Below are positions 4,646-11,457 of a DNA stretch of 64,000 nucleotides, piece by piece. Both the position numbers and the translations under genes were made by a program. Source of the DNA: Trichosphaerium sp. ATCC 40318 (lineage: Eukaryota; Protista; Tubulinea); contig JALMLS010000423.1 in NCBI GenBank assembly GCA_038496445.1, positions 1 to 64,000 of the forward strand, given 5' to 3'. Position 1 is the first letter of the stretch, and every line of letters begins with the position of its first letter. The notes beneath the pieces were generated by a model. That model was not told the origin of the DNA, made no database searches, and saw only the letters and a list, made by a program, of their open reading frames with translations.

Positions 4646-4850
4646 CCTAAACCCTAACCCTAACCCTAATTGGCTTCTAGGGTATAACCCTAATTGTTAT
4701 TTTAATCTATTAGGGCTAGGGTTTTTTCTGGATTGAAATTTACAATTTAGGGCTAGGGTTAGGTTTTCAACCCTAATGATTATTTTGCATCTGTTGTTTG
4801 CTAGGGTTAGGGCTAGGTTTCCAGCCTTATGTTGAATTAGGGTTAGGTTA
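4646..4850. repeat. Interstitial telomere-like repeats, CCCTAA followed by degenerate TTAGGG/CTAGGG
   Basis: cctaaaccctaaccctaaccctaa at 4646-4669, then tagggctagggtt and ttagggttagg blocks at 4712-4850. Confidence 0.85.
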
Positions 4851-5284
4851 TGTAAATTTTCCACTTTTCTACTTGCTTTACACCTTGTTTGTATTTACAA
4901 TTATGATTATATTTATTTATCTTTACTACTATTTGTAAGGCTTAATTTATTTGGGTTACTTGTTTTGGTTTTTTTGACAACTTACAGTTTTACAACCAAA
5001 ACCAACATTTGATTATTTTTGCTAGTTTGTTGGCATTGGTAACTTTTTTGCAATTTGGTTAGTTTTATATTTGTGTATTTTTATGTATTACTTTACATTA
5101 CCATAAAAGCAGAAAAACACATGTTACAATTGGAGTAGGCTTAATGTTACAATAAAAAGTATTATTTCAGGACAAATCCTATGGTTTTTACTTTCACAAC
5201 CATTTGCACTATGTGTACTCAATACCATTATGTATAAGCTCAGTAATAACCTTTATTGTACTGGCTTTGCAGGTTAGTTGATAG

Positions 5285-8200
5285 CTACTCATTACGTGGA
5301 AAGTCAAGCTCAAAATTGGGAGACAAAGGATCAACTTCTATTGTCTCATCAAATGCATCACCAATTTCTACAGTGGCATCATCACGCTTAAATGGATCAC
5401 CTATAACAACTAATTAAAAACCACAGTACAACATGCTAACCACATACCAGTGTAACAACCATTAGCCATTGCAAAGGCAAGTAAATCGCCCCAATTAGGA
5501 TCTCTAAATAGTACACGTGGATTACCAACAACAACAAGGAGCGACTACAGGCGAAAACACATTAATACAGCACATGCTGGGTAGTAGTACTACAAGTACC
5601 TTAGATCGAGTGATTGCCACATTGAACCTCTTTGGATTTTTCAGAAAGCCAAGATTGTGTTTGTAATCAAAGTCCATGTGATTGCTAGATGAGCGTACAG
5701 TTGTAATTATAATAACCTTAAATTCTCTTCCCTATTTAATCCGTTATGACATTAGTGTTTGTATACTTCAACGCACTTGAAATCTTTCTACAGAACCAAC
5801 TTCGACTTGATAGAATCCATTCTCATCAAGCAAAGCCTTGATACGTGCAACTTGTTTACGATATGGTGAAATTACTCCTTAAATATGTGTTAGCTTTATA
5901 GTAGGGAAAAAAAAAAAAAGGAGGTGAATGTACCAATATCCCTTGGCTGTGGGCCGTTTACTTTTATCGCGCAAAGTGCCTTGACATATCCCAGTACTTT
6001 GAGAGCTTCCACAGTGTTAAACCACGATGGACTTGTCCCTTCTCGCTCATCTTTTCTGGGATTAAGGTTAACAAAAAGAAACAATAAAGCGCCACCACTT
6101 ACCCGCTAGTACAGCCGTGGAATATTAATGGAATCCTTGGATTAGGTAAGCCACGCCATCCCAGTAGCAAGTTGATTGCTCTTGTACTTGCTTTTGGTAC
6201 AAGCTCGTCATCATAAAAGAGCCTAGAAGGTACACGCAGCAGAGCAGGATGTGATCTGTAATTATATAGTAGCTTGGTTATGTAGTACGGATTGTATCCT
6301 AACAACACACTTAGCCTACGATTATGTACTGTACTACTATGTACCAGTTGTAGGCGCATAAGGCGCAGAGGTGTACAAGCGCTCCATGAGGCTGGTTTGC
6401 AATCCCAAGTTAGTAGCAAGTTGTGACCGAATAATTGGACCTGTGCAAATATTTTAGCTTTCTTGTGGCACAATACTATTTGTTGAATCATGTACCTAGT
6501 TGCTTTGGATCTCCGGCAAGTACAAGTTTAGTGTCAGGATGTAACACCCCTGAGCCACAAGCAACCAAGAGCTCTGGTTCAGTGGCTTGGCCGGCTTCGT
6601 CAACAAATATATAATCAAAGAATCCTGCCCGGAGTTAATTGCAAACACATGCGCCCATAAACCACATACCCGGTTTAACACCAAGAGACCACAAGTAACC
6701 AGAAGATATGAGCGTGCTAATAACAACACGATACTCAAGGTTAATTTCTTCCACTTCAGGCACTTGGAATCGCTCCACAGAGCGTCTACCCCTGTTGCTG
6801 TATGTTTTGGAATGTTCCATTACTTTTGGAGATACCTATAAACACTAGGTGTAAATACATCGTAGAAGAACAAAAGGTATGATTACGTCTTTTGGATTCC
6901 TACACATGCCATTCAAGCGGAACAATTCCTCAGGAGGAATAGGAGTGTCTGACATCAAGTCAGTCGCTAGTGAGTAAAAAGAAATAGGTGTTGCACGTAC
7001 TTCTACTTAAACGCTCAATCAAGATGTCAGCGGCACTATTAGATGGCGTCACACATAATATACGCTTGCCCTATGCTCGGTGAGATTACATTTTCAGGTC
7101 ACTATAAATTAAGTACTCATACCATAGTGTACAACTGTTTGACAGCTTCGACCACAGTTACTGTTTTACCAGTACCTGGAGGTCCAAATATAATGTATGG
7201 CAACCTAGATTCATGTACCGCAATGTGGTTTACTGCTTTCTAAAAATTTAAAGTATTAAAAACCAACCCTATGAGTTGAGAAAACAAAAACACGTACTGC
7301 TTGCTGAGGGTTGTACTGTAAGTTTTGGTCAAAGAACTTGAGGTCAATTAGATCTCTAGGAGGTGCTTCTTCTTGGTAGAGCGCCGGATTTGCCCAGTGA
7401 GGTGGTCCCTAATGCAACGTTTTAGTGAAAACACAAAAAAAGATGAAGAAAAATGAATACGTACAGTGAGTGTTGCTATAGCACAATGCTGAAGCCTTAG
7501 AGGTGTTCGGGAGAATGTGAAGCGCACACATACTTTGCCGCCTTTATATTTGTTGTGGAATTGTCTATCAAACTTCAAAAAGACGTTTTGCTTTTCAGTT
7601 CGATGTATATAACCTTCCCACTCGTCATTACGACCTGCACAAACCAATGTTTAGTAAACCGTAACTCCAAACATAATACAACACCCACCTTGCCAAGACA
7701 CAAACACTTTATCACCATAAAGAAGTGATGGGCGCTTTTCTGCTAACCCGGGAACCACCAGTTGCAAAAAGCCTTCATTGCATTTTGTTAGTTTTACATC
7801 AATGAGATCAAACTGTCTAATGTCCTTCCAGGATTGAATCTAGTAATAATTGAGCTCATGTCAAAAAAGCCAGCAAGTAGTTACCTCTTCTATCCAAAGC
7901 AGTGTAGAAAACTTATCTTTATATCCTGCCATTGCCGGACGGAGTCTATCATACACTTGACTCATGCTTTCCGCAGTCTCCATTGCTTCGATTAACTTTG
8001 CTGGAACACGATACTCCTCCAAGCGACGAACGAAATTTAATTTTTCAAATCTATAAGCTATTAATAACAATCAATCTTTAAATTTTCTCATTACAATTAA
8101 AAAAATTACTGACTTTCTGTTCGAAAAAAAAACACACGTACTCGGGTCTTGGTCCTCGGATCAATCTTCCTTTTGGTAGTGGGCGTGCTTCACGTTTCTT

Positions 8201-8834
8201 AAAAGCACTCTTAGGTTTCATCTTTTCCATAGCACCTCCTTCATCCTAAATTACCTTAGTGTTAGAAAGTTCGACATCAAAAAAGAAAACCAATAACACC
8301 AACCTTCACAGTGGCTGTCAAAAACCGACCAATATTAAAAGAACCAAAATCAAACATGACAATGGCTCTAAACTCCCCAATTGCGCTTGGAGCAAAAACT
8401 ACATCAACTTGCAGGTTATCTTGAGGCTTAAGTACAACTGGAAGCTTCTAGAAATTAAAAGTAAATAAGTAGTTTTTAAATGAAGTAGCAAACGCACAAT
8501 CTTTTTGGCAACTTCAAACTCAGAGACAGCGCTGTCTAGAATAAATACACGCTTAAGAGTATGAGGCGTTTTGGCAGTGTTCTTCACATTAAAAAATTTG
8601 CCTGTGAACAATTCATGTTAGAAACAAGCTAATAACGAAAAAGAGCATACCACAGCGCTGTTTAACCTTATTGTTAGGAAAAGTGATCTTCGACACAACA
8701 ATTCCACTCTTGTCACTTTCTTTAATGTGCCACATGGGTTAGAGTGACATTTAAAGAGTGACAATAACTATGTCTTACCAATATCTTCACGTGTAATCTC
8801 ATCTTGTGTGCGTATCATTTTGGATTTGTCGATC
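5285..8834 (-). CDS. MOV10: MOV10/SDE3/Armitage-type UPF1-like SF1 RNA helicase module (predicted C-terminal part of a fusion with the upstream EXO1-like domain)
   Basis: Spliced motifs: [144 protein letters not shown]; stop TAG at 5285-5287. Confidence 0.93.
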
Positions 8835-8888
8835 TAAAACGCAATGAGAAACAGAACGACGTATTTTACCTTTGTGTTAAAAGCTTAC

Positions 8889-10259
8889 TTCATAAGGCTC
8901 TGATGTGATAGGATTTATAGAACACTCAATACAAGTCTTTAGTGCTAACGAGTCGCTCAGGCGAGCACCTAGGCATTCGAGGTCACTTCGATCAACATGC
9001 GCAGGTATTGGCCTATGACAAAAAAATATTAGGTTACAATTATGCTACGTAGATACCTAAGCAACATACGCTAATGGCACAATCTCCTTTGATCTTTGAT
9101 CGTATACCCAATGGTGCAAAAAAACAAGTTCTGCCATTTTGAATTTGTCCTCATATGAAGCATCATAGCCACGAATCAATACCGAAATTACCTTGGTTTT
9201 TATGTCACACAAAATACATGTTGTTTTATTACCTTGCTTCCACTCTTGTATTTGTTAATGTTCTGATAAGCGTTCATCAAGCCCATGCCTGGATCATTTG
9301 GCACAATGTCACATCCAGCGAGAATAAACATGTGCAACAACATGTGAGGTGAAAATCGCCCAAGCTGAGGGAACTGCCGATTGTCAACGAGCTTGTCGCT
9401 AGTGTACAATTTGCCACGACCCTTATTTGTAATCTTTAGTAGCACCTAAAGTCGTAAATGTCAGTTGTTTTACTCACAAACAAGCGCTACAATTACTTAC
9501 CTTTTTGGCACCATAAGCGATCAGATCTGTGCTGTCGGATATTATCGTGTCAATGAACCCCGTATTAGCCAAATGAACTAGTTGGGCATCTGCATCATAG
9601 GGTGCCACAATACATTGTACACGACGCTGCTTTAGTGCCTTTAAAGTACGCAATAAATCTAACGGGATCTTTTTGACATTTTCAAATTTTTTGTGTCAAA
9701 AAATGTGAACGCATTGTAATACCTCAATGAGTTGACGCGTCATGTCAGGTGTCACGACTACTGCTTGTCTGAAATGATTGGCCGCTCTAGAATCACCTTT
9801 TTTCATGAAGTCTCGCGCTGCCTTCTCATGATCGTCTTTGTCCCTATTTTACAAAAAACGCGGGTTAGTACAACAACATTTCAAAAAAAAACTTGTAATC
9901 AGTGATAACGCACATTTTACGCCTTTCATAGAGCTCTCGCTTCGCTGGCAGTGGAGCGCCATCAAATACCATCACTGGGATGACGCCACTTCGCTGAAGC
10001 ATGGCAATCATATTTATACAGTGATTTATATATCTAAAACAACACTTCAGCGCAAGGAGAAACCAAATCAATAAATTAAATGCCCAAACAAAACGCACTT
10101 TCTTGTAGGCTTACCGAGCACCAACTCTTCAGCGCAAGAATACGCGCCTTTGCGAAGCCAACCAGAGGCATCAACGCCGACTTTCTTCCCTTTGAAGTCT
10201 GCAATATTACAATTGCGCGTTATAGACAACAAGAACTTGAACAGCCCTTTGATACCCAT
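8889..10259 (-). CDS. EXO1: Exonuclease 1-like (XPG/FEN1 family) nuclease domain, divergent; predicted N-terminal part of a fusion with the MOV10-like helicase
   Basis: MGIKGL...VGVDASGWLRKGAYSCA; PVMVFDGAPLPAK; IVAPYDADAQL; IISDSTDLIAYG; ILAGCDIV (H2TH); VFLHHWVYD; LECLG...INPITSEPYE. Seven exons, all phases consistent. Confidence 0.9.
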
Positions 10260-10409: not shown

Positions 10410-11457
10410 TCAAACGCGCTTTGAGAGCTCAACCGCCACTTGTGTGCCGAATTTAATGCTTGTGTATAGAATATTGTACAGTGGTGCCTACACGTCTTGT
10501 TATTAGAGTGCACACGTGGATACCAAACAAAAACGTTACCTTTTTGGAGTCATGCTCAATTGCAATGTCGTGATGCTCCATTTCATCATCTCGAAACTGT
10601 TTTACTACCTGTACAGTAAAAAAAATTAGGTAAGGGTCCAAAGGCAACACTATTTTCTCACCTTTCGCAATTGCTTATCCTCTGGGTCTACTTCTATAAT
10701 ACGCTTTAATTGGTCGTCGTAGTGTTCACTAATAGCAGATTCAACAGCTTCAGTGCATGCCATCGCCGCTTCTTTTCCTAGTAGGGCAGTACCATATCCT
10801 AAAGTTTATTTTACACATTTGTGTATATTTTTTGTCACAAACAATCTACCTGCTGCGTAGCCAAGTACTTCCCATACTGGATTTAAAGCAGTTGGCCGCA
10901 CGCGTCGTTCGTGCAAGAGCGTTTGGAAAGTCTCGTAGTGTTCCACCTCCTGATCCTTCATTTCTTTAATTTTATCTCCTAGAACACGTGGGACTTTAAG
11001 TACAAAGAGCACAAAAACACTGCCGCACCATAGGCTGATTTACCAAGTACTGCTAGTTGCCCATCGTATATTTTTTGTGCACCAAATTCCCCAGCGTGGT
11101 CCACTCTAAGGCTCACTGTCAAAAAAAATTTAAACGGTTTTTTTTTATGAATTCATAACAAACTAAACAATTGTTACCTAATAATCTCGTCCATGAGAGC
11201 CCTACGCTTGGCGTCGCCAAATATTGGAGAATATTTGCGTTTTAAGTCTCTGCCAGTAAAGTTAATCAAAACTGCCCTGGGGCTTTACGTACTCCCTATT
11301 GGGCGCGTCTTCACTAAACTTTGCAGCGTAATATCGTTTCGTATTATTTGCCTGAGGTCTAGCTAAACACGTCCTTACACATGTGTAGCGTTTAGTGGTA
11401 ACGCTACGGGCAAACATTGGTTGATTTAAACTCGATTTAGACGCCATACCTGAGCAT
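10410..11457 (-). CDS. COQ7: 5-demethoxyubiquinone hydroxylase, mitochondrial
   Basis: [65 protein letters not shown]; Arg/Thr-rich N-terminus like a presequence. Confidence 0.95.

Follow-up and report, generated by a model that had tools for sequence, protein, structure and literature searches.

We describe here a gene of Trichosphaerium sp. ATCC 40318 that probably encodes, in a single chain, the catalytic core of an EXO1-type 5' nuclease followed by a helicase of the MOV10/SDE3/Armitage type. The gene lies at positions 10259-5285, on the minus strand, of a stretch of 64,000 nucleotides (nt) of contig JALMLS010000423.1 (assembly GCA_038496445.1, positions 1 to 64,000), called the window below, and its predicted product is about 1158 amino acids (aa) long. 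In this protein, a charged linker of about 20 residues would join a tail-less EXO1 core to an Ig-like domain, a helical domain, a 1B beta-barrel and an SF1B motor. The join between the two halves was analyzed by comparison with a paralog carried by contig C16 and with a canonical EXO1 gene carried by contig C1 of the same genome.

The nuclease and helicase halves

The gene model was obtained by dynamic programming, then corrected with splice joints supported by RNA and with homology to the paralog. It extends from ATG 10259 to TAG 5287-5285 and comprises 28 exons and 27 introns, for a total of 1158 codons. The window is eukaryotic, with 38% G+C, and its introns are short with strong branch points, those of the gene ranging from 41 to 91 nt with a median of 55 nt. 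RNA evidence comes from the contigs of two public runs (X1 and X2), the only runs that hold parts of the locus; since these contigs are spliced, they derive from RNA. They confirm 12 introns of the gene. Nine of them, confirmed by contigs of runs X1 and X2, are in the 3' part, within the helicase core (5401-5447, 5545-5599, 5732-5776, 5878-5933, 6056-6102, 6299-6344, 6441-6495, 6836-6886 and 6949-7000), and three are in the 5' part (7635-7688, 8602-8650 and 9639-9722, the last one by a contig of run X2). These contigs also show transcription of the nuclease part (9537-9830) as well as of the helicase part, the two halves being expressed, with splicing, in the same runs and with a similarly low depth.

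The EXO1-type core (10259-8889, minus strand) has 333 codons distributed over seven exons (10259-10099, 10033-9914, 9843-9723, 9638-9501, 9445-9233, 9191-9070 and 9012-8889). Pfam scans, run on single in-frame exons, detected XPG_N on exons 1 and 2 (33.7 and 23.6 bits) and XPG_I on exon 4 (40 bits). Searches for the XPG_N and XPG_I families in the genome itself, i.e. in the 70 Mb of its own assembly, match those same exons. Furthermore, human EXO1 is the sole match of exon 9638-9501 in PDB (E-value 1.6e-9), and an exon of the paralog gives 4.8e-11 with EXO1 versus 7.6e-7 with FEN1. The core stops at residue 333, where the linker and the helicase begin. An earlier annotation of the window by a model that had only the letters and their open reading frames (the sequence-only reading) had stated that the MutS/MutL-binding tail of EXO1 is missing; this tail, which interacts with MLH1 and MSH2, is indeed absent.

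The helicase half (8833-5285, minus strand) comprises 21 exons. The Ig-like domain, i.e. the N-terminal beta-sandwich of MOV-10, is assigned to exons 8719-8651, 8601-8498 and 8447-8304. The MOV-10_Ig-like family (PF21633) matches exon 8447-8304 with 25.7 bits over model positions 75-125, a score obtained from one exon only and to be read against a cut-off of 27.4 bits; the short exons upstream gave no Ig-like match alone. An RNA contig covers 8303-8443 in this region, to which the confirmed intron 8650-8602 also belongs. Exons 8245-8142, 8050-7885, 7839-7689 and 7634-7465 encode a basic linker, the helical domain and the MOV-10 beta-barrel (1B); the intron between the first two (8141-8051) was placed by comparison with the paralog, without RNA support. 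MOV-10_beta-barrel (PF21634) was detected on exons 7839-7689 and 7634-7465 by Pfam (42.1 and 28.2 bits) and reaches 61.2 bits in the search of the genome itself, for a cut-off of 23.6 bits. The SF1B (UPF1-like) core (7408-5285) occupies the last 13 exons, up to the TAG stop. AAA_11 (44.1 bits) and AAA_12 (45.1 bits) were found on these 3' exons, and motifs I (GPPGTGKT), II (DEAGQ) and VI (NVAITRSK) are intact in the translation. Besides the contigs described above, one contig of run X2 matches only 33 nt of the P-loop exon (7158-7190), flanked by 65 and 89 unrelated letters; it probably comes from another helicase transcript or from another organism and not from the window gene.

A second gene of the same layout was found in the genome. 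XPG_N, XPG_I and MOV-10 beta-barrel matches are located on a single strand of contig C16, in the same order as in the window gene. This paralog (G000:C16:307253-312657, plus strand; L012 1754-7158) would encode about 1249 aa, a few introns of its helicase part being uncertain, and it ends with ...FNRNE* where the window gene ends with ...FPRNE*. The two genes share 37% identity in the nuclease, 31% in the linker and Ig-like domain and 53% in the rest, and therefore result from an old duplication. A second allele or haplotig of window 8300-9500 was sought in the assembly and nothing was found beyond the locus itself. The MOV-10 beta-barrel matches of the genome are limited to the two fused genes and to one fragment on contig C213 (16910-16978, plus strand). 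This fragment is an isolated stretch of 23 residues that shares 87% identity with the beta-barrel exon of the window gene, no other part of the gene being found within 17 kb. It could be a relic or an exon that was captured.

In human EXO1, seven acidic residues bind the metal ions (D30, D78, E150, D152, D171, D173 and D225). All seven are kept in the C16 paralog, which, judged from these positions, looks fully competent. The window copy keeps D30, D78, D152, D173 and D225, has an Asp in place of E150 and a Ser in place of D171, and is thus acidic at six of the seven positions. Its local motif is SDSTD, versus TEDSD in EXO1, E170 being also replaced by Asp. The window copy also departs from EXO1 in other columns (Y32S, H36R and E89Y) whose conservation within the EXO1 set reaches at least 93%. 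The Ser equivalent to D171 weakens the proposal of the sequence-only reading, developed below, of an enzyme that unwinds and cuts in small-RNA biogenesis or anti-transposon defence, for this copy and not for the family; the window copy may be weakened, non-cutting or regulatory. It is even conceivable, although less likely than not, that the fusion is real and that the nuclease of the window copy is catalytically dead, being used by the helicase as a module that binds 5' ends or flaps, in the manner of yeast Mkt1, whose XPG-like domains bind but do not cut. The substitutions listed above would fit such a loss, as would the long branch of this copy in the nuclease tree (see below). However, this copy retains six of the seven acidic residues together with K85 and R92 of the arch, an Asp adjoins the lost D171 position and the active site of the C16 copy is complete. 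With one complete and one altered active site, the two paralogs can be viewed as a natural experiment on function.

The join, the paralog and the canonical EXO1

The nuclease frame of the window gene runs to ...INPITSEPYE, whose last base is 8889, and a GTAAGC donor begins at 8888. The junction intron predicted from the sequence (8888-8834, minus strand, phase 0, GTAAGC...CTCAT...TTTTAG) is 55 nt long, which is exactly the median of the 27 introns of the gene. It is followed by a linker exon of 55 nt (8833-8779), and exons 8833-8779, 8719-8651, 8601-8498 and 8447-8304 continue in phase across the join. The sequence-only reading had correctly located the end of the nuclease and the in-phase exons that lead into a complete MOV10-type helicase. 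Its junction intron stands as a canonical GT..AG intron but not with the size and limits that it had proposed (54 nt, 8888-8835). It had also presented the layout that two separate genes would need, and both signals of this layout are present: with the intron retained, translation would continue by EVSF up to TAA 8877-8875, and the linker exon contains an in-frame ATG (8818-8816) from which a separate helicase could start.

Comparison with the C16 paralog argues for a single frame. The coding sequence of the nuclease is exactly 999 nt in both genes. The exons around the join measure 124, 55, 69, 104 and 144 nt in the window gene versus 106, 40, 69, 104 and 150 nt in the paralog (the join being after the first one); all differences are multiples of three and intron phases are identical (0, 1, 1, 0). 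The nuclease of the paralog ends with ...SFSLVK and is followed by a GTAAGA donor, an intron of 51 nt and the exon VDIKNVEVNASDL. This linker exon, of 40 nt, is in the same phase as its counterpart in the window and lacks any ATG, and the two ATGs found in the 51-nt intron both run into stops. The first in-frame Met of the paralog (...VFEKMKEG...) is about 42 residues ahead of the exon that matches positions 76-107 of the Ig-like model. Therefore, a separate helicase would lose approximately the first 30 of the 126 Ig-like positions. On the predicted exons, the fused frame is the only way for the C16 paralog to encode the whole Ig-like domain.

The canonical EXO1 that the sequence-only reading had proposed to look for is present on contig C1 (G000:C1 ~632036-633720, L015, minus strand). 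It carries the long Ser/Pro/Lys-rich tail, the 3' end of the model running into downstream sequence, and keeps almost all residues conserved in at least 93% of 70 EXO1 sequences. Its last core exon, which ends with ...VLDPFTKQCFE, is 124 nt long like its window counterpart and is followed, at the codon homologous to the junction of the fused genes, by a phase-0 GTATGC..AG intron of 51 nt. Read-through past this donor stops after 16 codons; therefore, the EXO1 tail can be reached only by splicing at this point. Furthermore, introns at positions 161 and 281 of the coding sequence are common to the window gene, the C16 paralog and the C1 EXO1, and a strong GTAAG or GTATG donor is found at the same junction codon in all three genes. 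Given this phase-0 intron of the C1 gene, we regard the junction intron of the two fused genes as an ancestral EXO1 intron. The conservation of its donor in all three genes is an argument for functional splicing from the GT at 8888.

When 73 nuclease domains were placed in a tree, built without FEN1 or GEN1 outgroup, the two fused copies paired together and adjoined the C1 gene (98/84 support), on long branches (1.7 and 2.5). Most likely, the exons located past the pre-existing phase-0 intron of an EXO1 gene would have given way to those of a gene of the MOV10 type. A duplication of the fused gene would then have produced the C63 and C16 copies, the original EXO1 persisting on C1. Since the fusion point is a pre-existing intron and the ancestral EXO1 has survived, this locus would be a clean example of exon-level domain shuffling.

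Signals of transcript ends point in the same direction. A probable poly(A) signal (AATAAA, 5257-5252, minus strand) is located 27 nt past the helicase stop of the window gene; another is found 16 nt past the stop of the C16 paralog and one also follows the COQ7-like gene located upstream. No AATAAA is found within about 160 nt after the would-be stop of the nuclease, neither in the window copy nor in the paralog. Moreover, if there were two genes, a 3' end, a promoter and a 5' untranslated region would have to fit into 56 nt, compared with about 200 nt in the intergenic space upstream.

Several observations nevertheless weigh against a single gene. RNA contigs leave 8720-9440 uncovered and none spans the 8888-8834 splice, which is why the junction intron is not among the confirmed ones. 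Neither for the window gene nor for the paralog did spliced-junction 26-mers give an exact match in JGI metagenome and metatranscriptome contigs, from which the organism may be absent. No fused relative turned up in other organisms within the database searches described in the next section. Lastly, ATG 8818 of the window gene is just ahead of the Ig-like domain and a stop is encountered four codons into the intron; two genes are thus formally possible for the window copy. Overall, the paralog, the ancestral EXO1 intron and the absence of poly(A) signal at the join make the single gene put forward by the sequence-only reading the better-supported model and a probable one.

The locus could instead consist of two tightly packed genes, a tail-less nuclease ending at TAA 8877-8875 (...EPYEVSF) and a helicase starting at ATG 8818, the pair having been duplicated to C16. 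The lack of a transcript across the join, the rapid stop in the intron and the position of the ATG, 13 residues ahead of the predicted first Ig-like strand, would all be expected from such a pair, and gene predictors often merge same-strand neighbors in compact genomes. However, this arrangement is unlikely. The paralog offers its first ATG only within the Ig-like domain, a strong donor occupies the same codon in three EXO1-like genes, one of which is obliged to splice there, and exon-length differences keep the frame on both sides of the join. We roughly estimate at 0.01-0.02 the chance that two independent genes would show the frame fit in both copies and the 27 stop-free codons that precede the Met of the paralog. 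The missing AATAAA at either join also argues against it, as does the space of 56 nt that a 3' end and a promoter would have to share.

Both forms might also coexist, a fused mRNA being accompanied by a nuclease-only product of intron retention or by a helicase-only product started at ATG 8818, so that the coupling of the two activities would be regulated. This ATG may be the former start codon of the MOV10 gene, the stop is placed four codons into the junction intron, and RNA contig depth, although a poor measure, is somewhat higher for the 3' helicase exons than for those of the nuclease. Given that the paralog lacks an internal ATG, which restricts this scheme to the window copy, we consider it quite improbable. 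Lastly, a pseudogene was dropped, frames being intact in both copies and the window copy being expressed and spliced.

Relation to known systems and putative function

The single fused gene would combine two well-known modules in a new way and would belong to an already known class, that of helicase-nucleases. Its nuclease resembles EXO1 by its XPG_N and XPG_I domains, its best PDB matches to human EXO1, its arch residues K85 and R92 and the intron positions shared with the C1 EXO1. It differs from EXO1 in that a helicase occupies the place of the disordered C-terminal tail to which mismatch-repair proteins bind, in its fast evolution and, for the window copy, in the lack of D171. The helicase shares with MOV10, SDE3, Armitage and MOV10L1 the helical, 1B beta-barrel and SF1B modules, preceded by a putative Ig-like domain, in the same order and with intact motifs. 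We know of no member of the MOV10/SDE3/Armitage group described with a built-in nuclease; for instance, Zucchini is a separate nuclease partner of Armitage. Known members use separate nucleases or decay factors, such as RNase H2, with which human MOV10 works to remove LINE-1 RNA:DNA hybrids (PMC5829647), whereas here a nuclease of about 333 aa precedes the Ig-like domain.

UPF1 with SMG6, the herpesvirus vhs protein with eIF4A/eIF4H and the helicase-RNB protein HELZ2 likewise couple an RNA helicase and a nuclease to destroy RNA. Two of these nucleases, vhs and SMG6, have PIN/FEN-like folds. However, these associations are mostly non-covalent or involve other nuclease folds, and none unites an EXO1 core and a MOV10 helicase. 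A similar layout is that of Dna2, which carries an N-terminal nuclease and a UPF1-like SF1B 5'-3' helicase in one chain and acts on 5' ends and flaps (PMC4716839). Nevertheless, Dna2 has a PD-(D/E)XK nuclease, an Fe-S cluster and a threading tunnel, whereas the nuclease of the fused genes has a FEN/EXO1 fold and a helical arch. The two helicases are not orthologous modules; this is an analogy of layout and not membership. If the fusion is real, the layout of Dna2 would have been invented a second time, independently and possibly to act on RNA or hybrids.

EXO1 and MOV10-type helicases both have 5'-3' polarity, and a tethered pair could unwind and cut. The helicase would load on a single-stranded 5' region and move 5' to 3', and the tethered flap/5'-exonuclease would cut the 5' end or flap exposed by unwinding, the whole being a processive enzyme that would unwind and cut in the 5'-3' direction. 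For enzymes of the EXO1 fold, a free 5' end or a flap is required beneath the helical arch. The likely substrates would be RNA or RNA:DNA hybrids, for instance retroelement intermediates or products of RNA-dependent RNA polymerases (RdRP). A role in silencing or in the control of retroelements would be plausible, and MOV10 has been linked to Argonaute complexes (PMC8799784). We propose, with considerable reservation, that the only MOV10-type helicases detected in this lineage have become fused to an EXO1-derived 5' nuclease and act as self-contained destroyers of RNA or hybrid strands in RdRP/Argonaute-linked silencing or in retroelement restriction. If this is true, one chain would do what animals achieve with MOV10 and separate nucleases. 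The genome has a rich set of RNA-silencing genes: at least five loci with eukaryotic RdRP domains were observed on contigs C29, C81, C93 and C6 (with one pair on C29 and two loci on C6), as well as Piwi-domain loci on C37 and C549 (one or two).

This combination is of interest because MOV10, SDE3 and Armitage have central roles in pathways that involve transposons, viruses and small RNAs, and in which the nuclease that acts on the unwound strands is debated and differs between systems. A natural fusion can be viewed as a "Rosetta stone" that predicts a direct link between a MOV10-type 5'-3' helicase and an EXO1-fold 5' flap/exonuclease.

Full-text literature searches did not retrieve any description of an EXO1-MOV10 architecture, and one review on amoebae mentions stand-alone MOV10-like candidates only. 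Homology searches used single exons or an EXO1 proxy as queries, against libraries that do not include the proteins of this genome. The 114-aa nuclease exon of the paralog, compared with 1.84 billion representatives (HMMER), has no close relatives there: its best matches are canonical EXO1s with 40% identity, and the ten of these proteins that were scanned with Pfam have XPG domains and no helicase. With residues 1-300 of the EXO1 proxy P0003 in a word-index search, the best 120 of 4801 matches are all XPG-only. Furthermore, BLASTP of both helicase halves against the 264 nearest EXO1-like database proteins gave no real match, and single-exon look-ups in the ESM Atlas returned only fragment clusters of XPG_I or of MOV-10/UPF1 1B domains. 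Within the reach of such queries, databases and literature thus agree with the sequence-only reading, which knew of no description of this architecture.

Neighboring features

A gene read by eye as COQ7-type di-iron hydroxylase-like is located upstream of the fused gene (window 10460-11120, minus strand), its stop being about 200 nt from the nuclease ATG. On the other side, degenerate CCCTAA-like repeats of the telomere type are found at window 4800-4870, about 420 nt downstream of the helicase stop.

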